Part shown: one piece after another, positions 14,667-47,531 of the stretch
Layout: every line of letters begins with the position of its first letter
Numbering within the stretch: the first letter of the stretch is position 1
Virus record (IMG/VR): IMGVR_UViG_3300042261_002385
Span: 372,266 to 436,265 of that record
Length of the DNA: 64,000 nucleotides
Strand: one strand, 5' to 3'
The notes under the pieces: model-generated
The model's database searches: none
Seen by the model: the letters and a program-made list of their open reading frames with translations, nothing else
Told to the model about the DNA's origin: nothing
Position numbers and translations under genes: made by a program

Positions 14667-16472
14667 ATGTCAAATTGGACTTTAATTAAAAGAATCTGGG
14701 AATTCGCTTACCCTTTTAGAAAAACTATTGGAGTAATTTTCTTATGTATTCTTTTTACAGCCATCATTGATGGAATCAATACTTATTTTTTAAGTAATAT
14801 TTTTGATATCATTCAGAAACACTCAAACGATCCAAATTATATGAATGCAGCTCTTCTATCAGCTGCATTGGCTGGAATAGGAGTATTTGTAAGAATTCTT
14901 ATTTCAAGATATCAAGGTAATCTTGAAATAAGAAAACTTGATATAACTGCCTCAAACCATTTAAATCATTTTTCAATTGCAAAATATTTTGGATTTTCTA
15001 ATGGTCAACACATCAATGAACACTCCGGAGTTAAACAAAATATAATTACATCTGGTTTTCAATCAGTTCAAGGTCAAATTCAGCTTTTTGTTTATCACTT
15101 ACTTCCAGCAGTTGCTAACTTTATAGTTTCAATTGTGATGTTGTTTTATATTAGCTCCTACATAGGATTCGCTTACTTAGGTGTGTCTTTTATTTTTCTT
15201 TGGTCGATATATAAGTTCAATACTTATCTTCAACCAAAATTGAGAGAAGTAAGAGACGCTAGAAATCAAACAGCTAGAACAATTTCTGAATTGTATCGAT
15301 TTGTATTTTTAATTAAAAATGAAGTAGCTGAAAAGAAATCCTTAAATGATTTGGATGATGTTCAAGATGCGCATCAACAGGCCTATGAAAAGACTTGGCT
15401 ACCTGGAAATAATTGGTTGACCATCATTCGATTATCAACTGCTGGATTTAGATACTTAACCATACTTTTTGCAGTTTGGTTGTTATTTAATGGTTTTATA
15501 ACTGCAGGTGCTATCTTCTTAATCTTTACCTGGTCTCAAAACTTCATAACGTCTCTTTGGATGATAACTGATATGCAAAAACAATTTATAACAGATAAAA
15601 TTAACATTGAAAAGTATTTTGAAATTTTAGAAATCAAGCCTGACGTTCAAGAAGTTGAGACTCCAATAAGTTCAGATTTAATAGGAGATATTGAGTTTAG
15701 AAATGTCGAGTTCAGTTATCCACAAAGAAAAAAATCACATAGTGATAAATTAGAAGATGAACTTCAATCAGAAATGGTTTTGAAAGGACTAACATTTACA
15801 ATTAAAGAAGGTGAAAAAGTTGCCTTTGTCGGTGAAAGTGGTTCGGGTAAATCTACAATTGCGAATCTTGTAAGAAGAGCATTCGATCCACAAAATGGTG
15901 AAATTTTAGTAAATGGTAATAATCTTAAAGAATTAGAACTAAAATCATTTCTTAGAAAAATTGGAAGCGTAGACCAAGAGGTAAATCTCTTTGATAAGAG
16001 TATTCGAGAAAACATTTCTTATGGAACAGAAAGACTACTAACCGATGAGGAGTTAAATAACATATCAAAGATGGCTCGTATTGATTCATTTTACAAAAAA
16101 CTAGAACATGGTTGGGACACTATTGTTGGTGAACGTGGAGCTAAAGTATCAGGCGGTGAAAAACAAAGAATTGGTATCGCAAGAGCATTGGCTAAGAATC
16201 CAGAAATACTTATCTTTGATGAGGCGACTTCTGCACTTGACACTGTAAGTGAAAGAGTGGTTCAAAAATCAATCGATGCTGTTAGTAAAGGAAAAACTTC
16301 TATAATCATCGCACACCGTCTTTCAACTGTAAAAAACTGCGACAAGATATTTGTATTAAAACAGGGAGTATTATTAGCTGAAGGAACACATGAGCAACTT
16401 TTAGAAAGTTGCGAATATTATAAAGAATTAGTAAAACATCAATTAACAAATAAACCAACAGAAAATGTATAA
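14667..16472 (+). CDS. ABC exporter, fused TMD + ATPase
   Basis: TM helices; GESGSGKS, VSGGEKQR, ILIFDEATS, IAHRL. Confidence 0.93.
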   Translation: MSNWTLIKRIWEFAYPFRKTIGVIFLCILFTAIIDGINTYFLSNIFDIIQKHSNDPNYMNAALLSAALAGIGVFVRILISRYQGNLEIRKLDITASNHLNHFSIAKYFGFSNGQHINEHSGVKQNIITSGFQSVQGQIQLFVYHLLPAVANFIVSIVMLFYISSYIGFAYLGVSFIFLWSIYKFNTYLQPKLREVRDARNQTARTISELYRFVFLIKNEVAEKKSLNDLDDVQDAHQQAYEKTWLPGNNWLTIIRLSTAGFRYLTILFAVWLLFNGFITAGAIFLIFTWSQNFITSLWMITDMQKQFITDKINIEKYFEILEIKPDVQEVETPISSDLIGDIEFRNVEFSYPQRKKSHSDKLEDELQSEMVLKGLTFTIKEGEKVAFVGESGSGKSTIANLVRRAFDPQNGEILVNGNNLKELELKSFLRKIGSVDQEVNLFDKSIRENISYGTERLLTDEELNNISKMARIDSFYKKLEHGWDTIVGERGAKVSGGEKQRIGIARALAKNPEILIFDEATSALDTVSERVVQKSIDAVSKGKTSIIIAHRLSTVKNCDKIFVLKQGVLLAEGTHEQLLESCEYYKELVKHQLTNKPTENV

Positions 16473-32069: not shown

Positions 32070-33074
32070 TTAGTAACCGAATACTCCTTTGTCTGCATTA
32101 TAATTTTGTAAAACCTCATCTGGAGTTAAGGATCTTGTATAACAATAAACTTTAGATACTCTTCCATTTAGTAAATTACCACCAGGACTATAACAAGCTA
32201 CATTTGTAGAACCGTTACCGGTATAAGCTGTTTTAATAGTTGTATAACTACTATCTAATATTCCGTTTATATAAAGTTTCATTCCATCTGTTGTATTAAA
32301 AGTTAAAGCTGCATTATACCACTTGTTTAAACTAAACGTAGCAGTTGATGGATAGTTAGAAGGAAATCCTGCCCAATTTGAATGACCGTTATACATTTTA
32401 TTAGTTCCTTGAAAAAACATATAATGACCTCCAGTATTACTACTTAAAACATTGTTGTCTTGATATGAATTTAAATAAAACCAAACAGATTTAGTATAAG
32501 ATGTTGATGATAGAACCGCTCCTGAACCACTACCGTATTGATTAGAACCATTAAAGGTGAAATAAGCAGGTGATGTTGAAGTATATGTAGGATTATTAAC
32601 AAGTGTAATGTTTTGAGTCGTGCCTGCTAAATCTGTCCAAGTAGTTCCTGATCCTGTATAACTTAAAGGATTACCAGCATCTAGACGTAAAGATAAATCA
32701 GTAGTGACAATTTGACCATAAGACGTCCAATATCCATTTGAGTTTAAATAAGATAAAGCATTTGAAGCTGTTAAAAATGATTGACTCGTCAACTTTAAAA
32801 CAGTAGATAAGAACTCAGCATCAGTAAATTGAGAGGTTCTTCTGAATCCTACCGATGTTCCTGAAACTATCACACTTCCAGATGCTGCTGTTTTTGGGCC
32901 TGTATAAGGGTATCCAATTATATATCCTAAATCTTCATCGGGTCCGTTAAACCAAGTCAATCCACCACAACCGGCTGTCCAACCAGTGGACTGAATCGAT
33001 AAGTTTCCATACTGAGTTGATCCAGTCGGTGCACTTAAACTTGGATTATAAGCAAACGCTCTTGATGTTGGCAT
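32070..33074 (-). CDS. LamG/concanavalin-like domain protein (putative tail/virion)
   Basis: LRLDAGNPLSY.GSGTTW.DL, KLYINGILD, SKVYCYTRSLT..EV.QNY. Confidence 0.75.
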   Translation of the reverse strand: MPTSRAFAYNPSLSAPTGSTQYGNLSIQSTGWTAGCGGLTWFNGPDEDLGYIIGYPYTGPKTAASGSVIVSGTSVGFRRTSQFTDAEFLSTVLKLTSQSFLTASNALSYLNSNGYWTSYGQIVTTDLSLRLDAGNPLSYTGSGTTWTDLAGTTQNITLVNNPTYTSTSPAYFTFNGSNQYGSGSGAVLSSTSYTKSVWFYLNSYQDNNVLSSNTGGHYMFFQGTNKMYNGHSNWAGFPSNYPSTATFSLNKWYNAALTFNTTDGMKLYINGILDSSYTTIKTAYTGNGSTNVACYSPGGNLLNGRVSKVYCYTRSLTPDEVLQNYNADKGVFGY

Positions 33075-36678: not shown

Positions 36679-38016
36679 ATGATATCAAGACTTTCAACAT
36701 TTTCGGGACCTATATCTACTATATTTAAAAAAATCACTAGTTCTACTTCTGTCGTCACAAATGGTTTAGTTCTTTACTACGATCCAAGTAATTCACAAAG
36801 TTATCCAGGAACTGGAAATACTATCTATGACTTATCTGGAAATTCACTTCACGGTTCAATGTCTAATATTAGTTTTACCAGTTCATATTTTACTTATAAT
36901 GGAACATCATCACAAATATCTATAACCGATAATTCCTTACTAGAACCTGGAAGTGGTAGTTGGACAATGGAAGCTTGGGTTAATCAAACTGTTTCAGGAA
37001 ACGATGTTGTATTAGGTAAATTTGATAACGGTGGTTTATCTGAAGATGTTAGTTATAGTCTTAGAACTACCGGAACTAACTATTATGGTCAATACAGTGA
37101 TGGTTCTGGAACAGGTGCAACTTTATTTCAAAATAGTATTACTGTTACAGCAAGTGTTGGAAACTGGTATCAAATAGTTTTAGTTTGGAAAAACGGAGCA
37201 GTAAAAACGTTAGAAACGTTTGTAAATGGTCTTAGTATAGGAACTTCAAGTCACAGTTTGACTAGCTTAGTTAATACCGCAAACAACCTTTATATTGGAA
37301 GTTACAATGGTGGTGAGTATACTCAATACTTTGATGGAAAAATTGGAGTAGTAAGATTGTATAATACAGCATTGACACAAGCTGATGTTTATCAAAACTT
37401 CTCTGCTGATGCTTCTAAATATGGTTTAGTATATGATGAGATTAGAGAACAACTTACCGAATCACAAAGGATAACATATGACGCAGCAACTGATGGCAAT
37501 TGGATTAAGGTAACACAGACTCAATATGATAATATCGCAACTAATGTGTTAGGCACCACAAAATACCGAGATACTGACTCTAATTTTACAGCTGGATCAT
37601 CTCAATGGGGTAGTCCTTTCTTTTTAGTGGGTGGTTCAGCAAGTTTCTATATACCGGCTGATAACTATATAGTCGCGTATAAATTTATTGCAGGTAGAAC
37701 AAATGAAACCTACTCTACAAGAATTTATCAATCAAATACTTATTCACCAACTGCCAGTTCTTGGACCGCACTTGGTGTGACTAACTCGTTTGTTACCGGA
37801 GCATCAGCTAACGAAGTGGCTTACTATGTAAGAAAGAAACCAAGTTCAGTTACTCCTATAAATGTATTTATAGCTATCTATTCATCTAACAATCTTAAAC
37901 AAAGTGTTGGAACACCGACTTATCTTAGCTCTAATTTTGGAACATCATTTACTACTTATGCTTCAACAAATTCACCAGCTTTACAAGTATTAGCGACTCC
38001 TACAAAATCTTGGTAA
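36679..38016 (+). CDS. LamG-domain protein (putative tail/receptor-binding)
   Basis: GLVLYYD...SYPGTG, WTMEAWV, YIG...FDGKIGVVRLYNTALT. Confidence 0.75.
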   Translation: MISRLSTFSGPISTIFKKITSSTSVVTNGLVLYYDPSNSQSYPGTGNTIYDLSGNSLHGSMSNISFTSSYFTYNGTSSQISITDNSLLEPGSGSWTMEAWVNQTVSGNDVVLGKFDNGGLSEDVSYSLRTTGTNYYGQYSDGSGTGATLFQNSITVTASVGNWYQIVLVWKNGAVKTLETFVNGLSIGTSSHSLTSLVNTANNLYIGSYNGGEYTQYFDGKIGVVRLYNTALTQADVYQNFSADASKYGLVYDEIREQLTESQRITYDAATDGNWIKVTQTQYDNIATNVLGTTKYRDTDSNFTAGSSQWGSPFFLVGGSASFYIPADNYIVAYKFIAGRTNETYSTRIYQSNTYSPTASSWTALGVTNSFVTGASANEVAYYVRKKPSSVTPINVFIAIYSSNNLKQSVGTPTYLSSNFGTSFTTYASTNSPALQVLATPTKSW

Positions 38017-42311: not shown

Positions 42312-43172
42312 TTATCTTAATTTGGCAATAGCTGAATTCTTAATCTGACGACATCTTTCTTGACCAACTCCAATCACATTAGAGATTTCAGAAATTGTCA
42401 TTTCAGAATGACCTGATAGCCCAAATGACATTTCAATAACCAATCGTTCTCTATCTGATAAACGAGTAAGTAGTTGTGATATCTCATACTTAACAGAATC
42501 AACTTCTAAGTCTTTATCAGTTTCTGAATCAGAACTTATTGTATCAATTAAAGTAAGGCTATCTTCATCAAAAGATATTTGACTATCTAATGAACTAACA
42601 TAAGCAGATGATTTTAAACTTAATTCAATCTTACTTACATCAACACCTAAAGCTTCAGATAGTTCTTCGGCAGTCGCTGGTCTTAATAACTTCTGTTCTA
42701 AGTTGATTTGACATTCTCTAATCTTATTTAAACTATTGATTTGATTTAAGGGAAGTCTAATCATTCTGGAGTTATCTGCCAAACTTTGAAGTATTGATTG
42801 ACGAATCCACCAAACAGCATATGAAATGAATTTTATACCTTTAGTTTCGTCAAACTTTTGTGCAGCTTTTATTAGACCAATGTTTCCTTCACTTACTAAG
42901 TCAGAGATATCTAAACCTCGACCTTGATATTGTTTTGCAATACTAACAACAAAACGTAAGTTAGCTTCGACTAATTCGTTTTGAGCTTTGAGACTTCCTT
43001 GTTTAATTTGTTTAGCAAGTTCTACCTCTCTGTCTGGAGTGATAAGTTGTTTAGGATTAATGTCTTTTAGATATTTATCAAAAGACTCGGAATCACGGTT
43101 AGTGATTGATTGTTGGATTTTCGTAGTGTTTCTCATATAATATAAATATACTATATAGACGTAAAAAGTCAA
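42312..43172 (-). CDS. rpoD: RNA polymerase sigma-70 factor, short Bacteroidota primary-sigma type
   Basis: ANLRFVVSIAKQYQGRG, EGNIGLIKAA..FD..KG.KFISYAVWWIRQSI. Confidence 0.9.
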   Translation of the reverse strand: MTFYVYIVYLYYMRNTTKIQQSITNRDSESFDKYLKDINPKQLITPDREVELAKQIKQGSLKAQNELVEANLRFVVSIAKQYQGRGLDISDLVSEGNIGLIKAAQKFDETKGIKFISYAVWWIRQSILQSLADNSRMIRLPLNQINSLNKIRECQINLEQKLLRPATAEELSEALGVDVSKIELSLKSSAYVSSLDSQISFDEDSLTLIDTISSDSETDKDLEVDSVKYEISQLLTRLSDRERLVIEMSFGLSGHSEMTISEISNVIGVGQERCRQIKNSAIAKLR

Positions 43173-43808: not shown

Positions 43809-44255
43809 ATGAAAAACAACTTTAAAACAAAATGGACTCGATTCAAACGTAAATTCATTGTAGCCTGGTATGGCCTTAGTGCAACACGAAGAGATTCTAG
43901 AATCCAAAAACCTAAAATGTCCGAGACCGAAGAACAAGCAGCCAGAATTTGGATTAAAGTAGTCCATCAAAAAGATTCTGATTTAATGTATAATCCACAA
44001 ACACACGAAGCTTATGCGCTCTGGGAATCACCAAGTGGAACTGTTTACCTATTCTTAGAAGCAGGAAACCTTAGAGTTATCAATACCGTTGTAGGTTATG
44101 ATATCAGATTAAGCTCACAAGTTGAACAGTGGTGTGCTAGTATCTTCTCACGAGAAGTGGCTAAACGTAGAGCGAAGTTTCGTAAGAATGCTGAATCTAA
44201 AGTAACACACTCATTAGATAGTCTTGAGACTAGATTAGAAACACTTGAGAAATAA
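43809..44255 (+). CDS. Hypothetical protein
   Basis: ORF. Confidence 0.7.
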   Translation: MKNNFKTKWTRFKRKFIVAWYGLSATRRDSRIQKPKMSETEEQAARIWIKVVHQKDSDLMYNPQTHEAYALWESPSGTVYLFLEAGNLRVINTVVGYDIRLSSQVEQWCASIFSREVAKRRAKFRKNAESKVTHSLDSLETRLETLEK

Positions 44256-44468
44256 TGTTATATGTTGTTAAAGTAAAAGATAAAGATTTGTTTTTTACTC
44301 GTGATGATTCAGATGAATGGATTTCTGAAATCCCACTTATTGTTACTTTAAAAGAAGCCGAGACCATTATGACTTGGGCGAAAACAAAGATACCCGATTT
44401 GTCAGAAGATAATTGGTATCAAAAACAAGATTTAGAAATTAGACAAATAACATATCAAATTATTTAAT

Positions 44469-44633
44469 CTTAGTGACCGTTAGTTGCACTAAGCTCTATG
44501 TCAAGATAGAGAATATAATCAATTAAGACTTGACTCAACTTAATTGTTTCGCTATTGACACTGAGCGAACGGGGTTTAAATCCACCTGTCTGTAAGATGG
44601 GGTCCAGAAGATGGGTGAATCAGTGTCTTTTTT
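44469..44633 (+). ncRNA. Candidate structured RNA with complementary loops
   Basis: Stems cttagtg/cactaag, ctctat/atagag, caattaag/cttaattg, gacactga/tcagtgtc; loop gtcaag complementary to cttgac. Confidence 0.55.
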
Positions 44634-44642
44634 ATTTTAACT

Positions 44643-44906
44643 ATGATAGTATTCAATACAATAAAGAAAGCAGAACACTGGTTAAAGTGGTATTCTAAAC
44701 ATAACGATTATCATAGAGATGGTTATGATTGGGAATCTGTTTCAACTTATATTGATGGAAATCTTGTTGTAACTCGTCACCAAGGTGATGGTTGTGGGTG
44801 TGGATGTGACGACCATCATTTTGATTTCATCACAGTTCATGGTAGAATTAAAAAATTCGATACTAAATCTATTCGTGGTGAAAAGATAAATGACTTAGGT
44901 GTATGA
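44643..44906 (+). CDS. Hypothetical protein with C-terminal tag (RGEKINDLGV)
   Basis: ORF; CGCGC motif; tag. Confidence 0.7.
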   Translation: MIVFNTIKKAEHWLKWYSKHNDYHRDGYDWESVSTYIDGNLVVTRHQGDGCGCGCDDHHFDFITVHGRIKKFDTKSIRGEKINDLGV

Positions 44907-45106
44907 TAGTTAAATGTAAATCAGATAATGACTCTGTTGGTAAACTTAAAGGCTTGACTATTGATAAATCATATACAGTTACTGGTATTGATAAAATAGG
45001 GTATAGAATAGTTGATAATGAATTTAGAAACTATTGGTATACAAAAGAATTGTTTTATCCGATAGATGAAGAAAGAAATAAAAAATTAAATGCCTTAGGA
45101 ATATGA
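44903..45106 (+). CDS. Hypothetical protein with C-terminal tag (RNKKLNALGI)
   Basis: ORF; similar architecture to 24558 and 10427. Confidence 0.7.
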   Translation: MIVKCKSDNDSVGKLKGLTIDKSYTVTGIDKIGYRIVDNEFRNYWYTKELFYPIDEERNKKLNALGI

Positions 45107-46943: not shown

Positions 46944-47531
46944 ATGAAAATAGTAAACAATAGAATAGACTTCTTAAACGAAGTTAAGACACTCATACCA
47001 GACAACCCAACGTGTATTGAAATAGGAGTAGAAAAAGGAGATTTTAGTAAACTACTTATACAATATCTGACACCTAAAAAACTATTCTTAGTAGATCCGT
47101 GGCAAACCGGTCACGATAAAAACTCAGAACCTAATTATGGAACAGTGTTAAATAGTTTACCAACCGCTTACTCTACAGAACAAGATTACGCTTCTATCTT
47201 AACTCATTTCTATAAAGATATAAAATCAAATAAGGTTATTGTAAGACCGGACTTCTCATATAATGTAGTAGATGATTTTCCTGACAACTATTTTGACTTT
47301 ATCTATATTGACTCCTGTCACCTTTATGATTCTGTTAAGGCAGATTTAAATGATTTTCTACCTAAATTAAAAGTAGACGGTATAATGGCCGGTCATGACT
47401 ATTTTAACTATGATAACTTTGGCGTAATCAAAGCAGTAGACGAGTTCTGTATTGAACACGGTTTTGAAAAAATAGTAATGGCTCAACCATCTTGGGATTG
47501 GGCACTTAGAAAAACAAATCTTAATTTCTAA
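46944..47531 (+). CDS. Class I SAM-dependent methyltransferase (Methyltransf_24-like)
   Basis: IEIGVEKG, FDFIYIDSCH.Y, GIMAGHDY. Confidence 0.88.
   Translation: MKIVNNRIDFLNEVKTLIPDNPTCIEIGVEKGDFSKLLIQYLTPKKLFLVDPWQTGHDKNSEPNYGTVLNSLPTAYSTEQDYASILTHFYKDIKSNKVIVRPDFSYNVVDDFPDNYFDFIYIDSCHLYDSVKADLNDFLPKLKVDGIMAGHDYFNYDNFGVIKAVDEFCIEHGFEKIVMAQPSWDWALRKTNLNF

Follow-up and report, generated by a model that had tools for sequence, protein, structure and literature searches.

A previously undescribed structured RNA with a kissing-loop upstream of a small conserved gene of giant phages: a candidate cis-acting leader

Does the gap in front of a small phage gene hold a functional RNA, and what might such an RNA do for the gene? 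The question is raised by a virus record of 436,265 bp, the final 64 kb of which (30% G+C; henceforth called the window) were analysed. An initial annotation made from the letters of the sequence had pointed to an ORF-free gap of 175 nt, reaching from the stop of ORF 44255-44467 to the ATG at 44643, and the gene-free gap agrees with the sequence; a mechanically called ORF (44555-44698) overlaps the RNA element and is not conserved. Four stems had been proposed within the gap, together with a complementarity between the loops of the second and third stem (GTCAAG/CTTGAC), a further helix ttcgct/agcgaa (44548-53/44564-69), and a T run behind the fourth stem (44628-33). All of these are present in the sequence, the four stems as perfect complements, and the loop-loop pairing is additionally held up by covariation among homologues. 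The 165-base gap holds a genuine, previously undescribed structured RNA with a kissing-loop; its features are listed in Table 1.

Table 1 Coordinates of the RNA element and the associated gene in the window
Feature	Position	Strand	Remarks
P0 hairpin (stem 1 of the initial annotation)	44469-44493	+	cttagtg 44469-75 / cactaag 44487-93, perfect 7 bp; abuts P1
P1 hairpin (stem 2)	44494-44511	+	ctctat 44494-99 / atagag 44506-11; loop L1 GTCAAG 44500-05
PK1 kissing-loop	44500-44534	+	L1 GTCAAG 44500-05 pairs with CTTGAC 44529-34 in L2
P2 hairpin (stem 3)	44520-44546	+	caattaag 44520-27 / cttaattg 44539-46; loop L2 44528-38
Near-invariant GUUUCGC	44546-44552	+	UCGC 44549-52 is the proposed PK2 5′ strand; just after P2
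Linker TATT	44553-44556	+	joins PK2 to P3; loop 1 in the putative H-type pseudoknot
P3 (stem 4)	44557-44627	+	gacactga 44557-64 / tcagtgtc 44620-27; encloses GCGA and the P4 domain
Near-invariant GAGCGA	44563-44568	+	GA closes P3; GCGA 44565-68 is the proposed PK2 3′ strand, pairing with UCGC
P4 domain, variable	44569-44616	+	base 44569-70/44615-16; contains GGGGTTTAAATCC
G and near-invariant AAUC	44617-44621	+	AA 44618-19 unpaired; UC starts the P3 3′ arm
U run	44628-44633	+	directly after P3
Associated gene, 87 aa	44643-44906	+	MIVFNTIKKAEH...GDGCGCGCDD; starts 10 nt after the T run

The gene directly downstream of the gap encodes a protein of 87 aa, also written MIIFNTIKKAEH...GDGCGCGCD, with 104 homologues in metagenomes at E ≤ 0.001. 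The homologues have in common an invariant N terminus, MI(I/V)FNTIKKAEH, and a GD(G/S)CGCGC motif; conserved residues of the protein further comprise a basic set (K8, K9, K19, R68, K70) and a His together with the CxCxC set. ORF 44643-44906 is protein-coding, given that its synonymous sites vary freely, and no RNA-level constraint was detected in its first codons, where synonymous sites vary as well. The protein had no match in Pfam, PHROG, PADLOC, NCBIfam, or the PDB sequences, and no fold relatives were found by Foldseek in PDB, VIA-align, AFDB clusters, and the ESM Atlas; the mean pLDDT of its AlphaFold model is 84. Within the gene, an imperfect direct repeat of 22 nt (44718-44739 and 44787-44808) was observed, the second copy of which encodes the conserved DGCGCGC.

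Homologous loci were obtained by alignment-based searches of IMG/VR and JGI metagenomes plus exact-protein look-ups. An IMG/VR search with the single protein yielded no loci; a search of a phage collection gave one weak match, LR745206.1 (an uncultured phage of 634,780 bp carrying a related element), which led to the first homologue. In this phage (L002; loci are henceforth denoted by L numbers), a tRNA-Arg(TCT) gene (2156-2230) and a 44-aa ORF (2247-2381) are located just upstream of the RNA. The element was present in 45 of 45 distinct loci of the gene family having upstream sequence, and wherever the upstream sequence was long enough, the same element occupied the 120-200 nt before the ATG. 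These 45 copies originate from lakes and a TARA ocean sample and lie on contigs of up to 816 kb; the DNA of the phage itself is present in many freshwater metagenome runs. With a covariance model, a single copy was detected per record in six phage records (41-635 kb), and this copy preceded the gene in every case; neither the model nor regular expressions retrieved extra copies in the genome. Protein-independent searches of IMG/VR were consistent with this linkage: a DNA pattern for the 5′ domain returned exactly the six contigs already known from the protein, and a DNA pattern for the 3′ core returned three of these six along with 25 further matches. The latter were rejected as chance matches, being situated within coding sequence and devoid of P3 pairing; L092 is doubtful (5-bp stem, E 0.35). 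When 185,579 species genomes of cellular organisms were scanned with the pattern, two matches were obtained, neither of which was confirmed by the model.

No other neighbouring gene was syntenic, even where the protein is 86% identical; hence, the RNA and the one gene constitute a cassette. In several loci, the genes that come after the 87-aa gene are on the other strand. The initial annotation had placed the element upstream of a C-tag cluster; its location upstream of the gene at 44643-44906 holds, whereas a tie to the cluster does not, given the absence of other synteny. As for the surroundings in the window, a 286-aa ORF on the minus strand (42312-43172), 1.3 kb upstream of the RNA, matches phrog_351, a family of phage RNA polymerase sigma factors (E 2e-68), and shows no synteny with the RNA in other loci; a methyltransferase (Pfam PF13578; phrog_2675 “DNA methyltransferase”) is encoded downstream (46944-47531, plus strand). 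A 601-aa ORF (14667-16472, plus strand) matches phrog_2392 (E 1e-124), a family of ABC-transporter ATPases, and counts as an auxiliary phage gene. ORFs 32070-33074 (minus strand) and 36679-38016 (plus strand) share a virion-structural-protein domain (phrog_8510, phrog_24074) and are probably paralogues.

Folding of the single sequence did not differ from chance (MFE z-score of −1.2 on the plus strand; 22 of 200 shuffles fold equally well), so that the proof of the structure has to come from the 45 distinct homologous copies. RNAalifold, applied to 35 copies, recovered P1, P2, P3, and a 2-bp base of P4, with compensatory changes in 18 of 20 pairs. In a model-based alignment of 41 copies, 94.3% of the cells of P1, P2, P3, and the P4 base were paired. 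The nested helices held 195 double-compensatory cells compared to a shuffle mean of 53 (0 of 500 shuffles reached the observed value), and only 31-54% pairing was left when the helix partners were slid by 1-3 columns. Individually, P1 (91% of cells paired) and P2 (95.5%) showed compensatory changes at five of five modelled pairs each, and P3 (98.1%) at six of eight; the length of P3 is 6-9 bp in 40 of the 41 copies, with a mode of 8. G-U pairs occur in all helices, which identifies the plus strand as the RNA strand, and the RNA thus faces the ORF on the plus strand. P0 could not be aligned at the sequence level; nevertheless, about 34 of 41 copies have a predicted hairpin that ends 0-2 nt before P1, its sequence being unrelated between copies, and the first stem of the initial annotation was therefore named P0. 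It is dispensable, as a relative detected in the X20 run lacks 44256-44493. The contig in question fuses 44255 to 44494, i.e., it stems from a relative without the 70-aa ORF and P0, in which the RNA begins right behind the preceding gene.

The kissing-loop PK1 was supported in the same manner. Its six aligned pairs were 96.2% paired in 36 copies versus 34-52% in slid controls, and 48 double-changed cells were counted against a shuffle mean of 13.4, a value reached by 0 of 1000 shuffles. The loop-loop pairs are hence maintained by compensatory change, the hallmark of a kissing-loop complex. At least 12 complementary variants were identified, including GUCAAG/CUUGAC (the window), GUGAGA/UCUCAC, GUAAGA/UCUUAC, GUGAUA/UAUCAC, GCAAG/CUUGC, GCGGA/UCCGC, GUAAAG/CUUUAC, AUAGAG/CUCUAU, and UUUGGAG/CUCCAAA. 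The most distant copies, those of a marine clade, possess a single strand, CCUGU, in place of the P1 hairpin, which pairs with the P2 loop (ACAGG or GCAGG), and since a single strand stands in for the hairpin, the interaction in this clade is a pseudoknot instead of a kiss. Mutual information revealed no tertiary pairs besides the helices and PK1. The word CCUCUCU in the P2 loop had been considered as an anti-SD mimic and was rejected as a core feature, as it is missing in the window's own clade. The covariation in homologues that the initial annotation had named as a check therefore confirms the structured RNA and its kissing-loop. Based on these comparative data, the fold comprises P0 and two hairpins, P1 and P2, whose loops kiss, followed by P3, which closes a variable P4 domain.

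Three short words of the element are close to invariant: GUUUCGC, GAGCGA (at the top of the 5′ arm of P3), and AAUC. GUUUCGC is constant in the 41 aligned copies except for L032 (one C-to-U) and L026 (first base G-to-U), and was also found in four further copies beyond the 41; AAUC is kept in the aligned copies except for L071 (AAUU). UCGC and GCGA are complementary at all four pairs in each of the 41 copies, the lone double change being a compensatory one in L032 (UUUCGU/GAACGA). The initial annotation had regarded this helix as an alternative, which it need not be with respect to P3: the strand order (UCGC, linker, P3 5′ arm, GCGA, P4 domain, AA, P3 3′ arm) is that of a classical H-type pseudoknot. 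The order S1-L1-S2-L3 fits, as do the narrow sizes of L1 (2-4 nt; the linker between PK2 and P3 has this length in 37 of 41 copies) and S2 (6-9 bp). The tight lengths of P3 and linker count for the pseudoknot because a pseudoknot requires them and a plain terminator does not. From the invariance and the single compensatory change, we infer that UCGC and GCGA may pair into an H-type pseudoknot (PK2) with GCGA stacked on P3, and that the invariant AA may lie in the minor groove of UCGC:GCGA. A more distal GCGAA was also considered as the partner of UUCGC and was rejected, because the columns before AAUC covary with the start of P4 instead. When transcripts cut before the 3′ arm of P3 were folded thermodynamically, the predicted probability of the UCGC:GCGA hairpin averaged 0.47 and reached 0.8 or more in 15 copies, and the 5′ arm of P3 stayed mostly unpaired within the hairpin loop.

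The P4 domain is variable, and the pairs at its base covary. Its interior measures 19-61 nt in the first 35 copies and is longer in L064 and L066, and its hairpins differ between clades; in the window copy, the MFE fold places them at 44572-75/44580-83, 44585-91/44595-601, and 44604-06/44612-14. A T-loop-like element proposed in the initial annotation, GGGGTTTAAATCC, turned out to be an ordinary hairpin in this domain that is restricted to close relatives, and, given the variation of P4 between clades, it is not a T-loop. In one GC-rich copy (L101 286-395 / L102 217-326), the P4 stem itself reads UCGC/GCGA and constitutes a second set of the pseudoknot words.

The element did not correspond to any known RNA family. 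Rfam 15, whose models cover hammerhead, twister, twister-sister, pistol, hatchet, and HDV-like ribozymes as well as all riboswitch classes, gave no match in the whole window at gathering thresholds, nothing overlapping the element at E ≤ 10 (44300-44800), and no match for five other copies at E ≤ 1. ARAGORN detected no tRNA or tmRNA in the window and called 28 tRNA genes elsewhere in the record; the latter are clustered at 37-75 kb and 162 kb (e.g., C1:37118-37204), and one has a four-base anticodon (agta). The failure of the initial annotation to match the element to tRNA, hammerhead, twister, or a known riboswitch is thereby borne out, and the Infernal search against Rfam that it had suggested returned no family for the six copies tested. 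To our knowledge, descriptions of structured RNAs in huge phages are few. No description of the motif was found in the literature, and riboswitches are not mentioned in the founding survey of huge phages (PMC7162821).

In most copies, among them copies of 56-58% GC, P3 is immediately followed by at least five T; the run is degenerate in about four (L026, L030, L045, L041). Only 6% of this genome's ORFs have a six-T run within 35 nt upstream. The distance from the U run to the ATG is 8-32 nt across copies, which leaves no room for a promoter, and the gene must consequently be transcribed through the RNA. P3 has the stable stem and the subsequent U run of an intrinsic terminator and lacks the compact loop of a few nt: 55 nt are enclosed in the window copy, and between about 25 and more than 65 nt in other copies. 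Because of this large domain, P3 escapes the simple terminator scan. A conserved antiterminator partner was found for neither P3 arm. A metatranscriptome run contained a contig of 151 nt, derived from a relative, that covers 44539-44690 including the U run, yet this hint of read-through is a weak one since DNA in that run is not excluded, and among the assembled contigs of a few RNA runs, the element was listed in none.

Upstream of the RNA, a TAnnTTTG box was found 23-29 nt before P1 in nine loci (L003, L025, L028, L029, L032, L040, L044, L007, L069), compared to about 0.1 expected per 120 nt. TAnnTTTG is the −7 element of Bacteroidota promoters. In L003, L025, and L028, a terminator-like hairpin and the box precede the RNA (in L003, the hairpin is compact and lies upstream of the box), which indicates that the RNA starts the transcription unit and forms the 5′ part of the transcript. 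In the window copy, such a box is missing, and the RNA comes immediately after ORF 44255-44467. SD-like words occur upstream of only 2.6% of the genome's ORFs (≥120 aa), and none precedes the 87-aa gene. Together, the few SD words, the TAnnTTTG boxes, and a protein with a CHU_C domain (type IX secretion) encoded on a related contig point to Bacteroidota hosts. For the four largest “Mahaphage” genomes, Bacteroidetes were predicted as hosts (PMC7162821).

Considering position and structure jointly, we assign a probability of about 0.5 to the reading that the element is a leader acting in cis in the manner of a riboswitch or attenuator, in which P3 and the U run would form a conditional terminator governed by the folded core. 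Among the possibilities offered by the initial annotation (ncRNA, ribozyme, or attenuator), the attenuator or leader fits best because a distance of 8-32 nt always separates the RNA from the ATG of the one gene and because its 3′ end consists of a stem and a U run; the ribozyme part did not gain an Rfam match. Riboswitches are characterized by a 5′ leader that combines a conserved aptamer and an expression platform, and the element has the leader position, an invariant junction, and the stem with the U run. Counting against a leader terminator is the enclosure of 19 to more than 60 nt by P3, which is unusual for an intrinsic terminator. Mechanistically, the folded core would tune how efficiently P3 and the U run stop transcription as an intrinsic terminator: in the nascent RNA, UCGC:GCGA would form first and keep the 5′ arm of P3 in a loop; invasion by the 3′ arm could then be helped or hindered by an effector binding to the invariant junction, with termination or read-through as the outcome. 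Candidates for this effector are small molecules and proteins, among the latter perhaps the 87-aa product itself. The RNA thus probably controls whether the 87-aa gene is transcribed. As a tentative extension, the element might represent a new riboswitch class or protein-sensing switch that is restricted to giant phages, the hosts of which are probably Bacteroidota. In such a switch, the kissing-loop domain would stack on a pseudoknot with the terminator itself as second helix, and would gate a one-copy, single-gene cassette.

Other functions have to be weighed against the conditional leader. In the main rival reading, the RNA and the 87-aa protein would form a two-part module with the layout of type III toxin-antitoxin loci, in which a promoter-driven, stable pseudoknotted RNA would mostly end at P3 and the U run, a minority of read-through would yield the protein, and the RNA would bind or neutralise it. 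ToxIN-type loci contain a promoter, a structured RNA, a terminator, and the protein gene in this order, and the order of promoter, structured RNA, terminator-like stem with U run, and small ORF agrees with that layout. Such a module would also account for a self-contained cassette in variable contexts, with RNA and gene linked one-to-one and no other synteny, and the conserved basic residues and the His/CxCxC set are of a kind that could bind zinc and nucleic acid. However, no tandem repeats were detected in the RNA (44300-44950, minimum score 30) and no direct repeats within the element, and the protein has neither a match to ToxN, AbiQ, CptN, or TenpN nor one in PADLOC, Pfam, or PHROG, nor a fold relative, which leaves the module somewhat unlikely. 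Switching would be absent altogether from a constitutive structural leader, the compact, pseudoknotted 5′ end of which would protect the mRNA from degradation or offer a U/A-rich ribosome landing site in a non-SD host. The rarity of SD-like words (2.6% of ORFs, none before the 87-aa gene), the location of the RNA at the 5′ end of the transcription unit in several loci, and the lack of a conserved alternative fold in the data would suit such a leader. It is nonetheless a decidedly unlikely solution, since about 17 junction nt are near-invariant while the helices covary, which goes beyond the needs of stability, and since the stem with the U run is terminator-like and rare before other genes.

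The remaining explanations account for less of the evidence. Compact, double-pseudoknotted folds with a small set of invariant junction nucleotides are typical of twister, pistol, and hatchet, and a new class of self-cleaving ribozyme or processing element, separating the leader from the mRNA, would be in line with the fold of the element, its few invariant junction nt, and its phage context; this is very improbable, as no Rfam ribozyme model matched even at E ≤ 10, the sequence suggests no cleavage site, and the U run would be left unexplained. A cis action on RNA polymerase like that of put in phage HK022, by which resistance to downstream terminators would be conferred, could be imagined from stacked hairpins just past a promoter-like box in a phage and from the phage sigma factor gene nearby in this genome. 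There would be little to antiterminate, though, because the gene is often alone on its strand, and with no similarity to put and a sigma gene that is not syntenic, the idea is more far-fetched still. Finally, the stems might be chance hairpins in an AT-rich spacer, the fourth stem and the T run terminating the upstream gene, so that no functional RNA would exist. The insignificant fold of the single sequence (z = −1.2) would be expected in that case, but massive covariation in 45 copies with differing upstream genes refutes it, and its probability is negligible.

Irrespective of the function, a covariation-supported and compact RNA (about 140-165 nt) with a small invariant core and a putative second pseudoknot has the profile of those orphan riboswitch and ribozyme candidates that have repaid experiments. 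The RNA accompanies a conserved gene one-to-one from lakes to the ocean, and a sensed signal would provide a handle on the role of this gene in infection. A terminator stem doubling as a pseudoknot helix would, if true, be an unusual expression platform. The alignment and model from this analysis suffice as a seed for a new RNA family.

Compared to known systems, the element resembles intrinsic (Rho-independent) terminators in its covarying stem of 6-9 bp directly followed by at least five U. It differs from them in enclosing a branched domain of 19 to more than 60 nt instead of a loop of 3-8 nt, in the invariance of the top two pairs of the stem and of the flanks, and in that P3 and the U run are located before a gene and not behind one. 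With ToxIN, CptIN, and TenpIN it shares the succession of promoter, pseudoknot-forming RNA, terminator, and protein gene in a self-contained mobile cassette, whereas tandem repeats in the RNA are absent and the protein is half the size of the known toxins and unrelated to them. The joining of two loops by about six covarying Watson-Crick pairs is reminiscent of L5-L13 of the cobalamin riboswitch and of the hairpin pairs of guanidine-II; here, in contrast, the kiss joins two neighbouring hairpins of the 5′ domain with 8 nt between them, and does not link an aptamer to its expression platform. A similar type of fold is seen in riboswitches that are built on an H-type pseudoknot and carry a terminator platform, namely preQ1-I, fluoride/crcB, and ZTP/pfl, and, for the fold, in SAM-II. 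These are likewise leader RNAs in which the pseudoknot helix, short and invariant, is stacked on another helix, an A-rich strand is placed across the minor groove, peripheral stems vary, and a stem with a U run precedes the gene, an arrangement that PK2, P3, and the invariant AA would reproduce. Unlike these, the element has no sequence or covariance-model similarity to any of them, carries the extra kissing-loop domain P0-P1-P2, and would use the terminator stem itself as one of the two pseudoknot helices. The element constitutes a new RNA family whose general type, that of structured leaders or riboswitch candidates, is familiar and whose layout is unusual.
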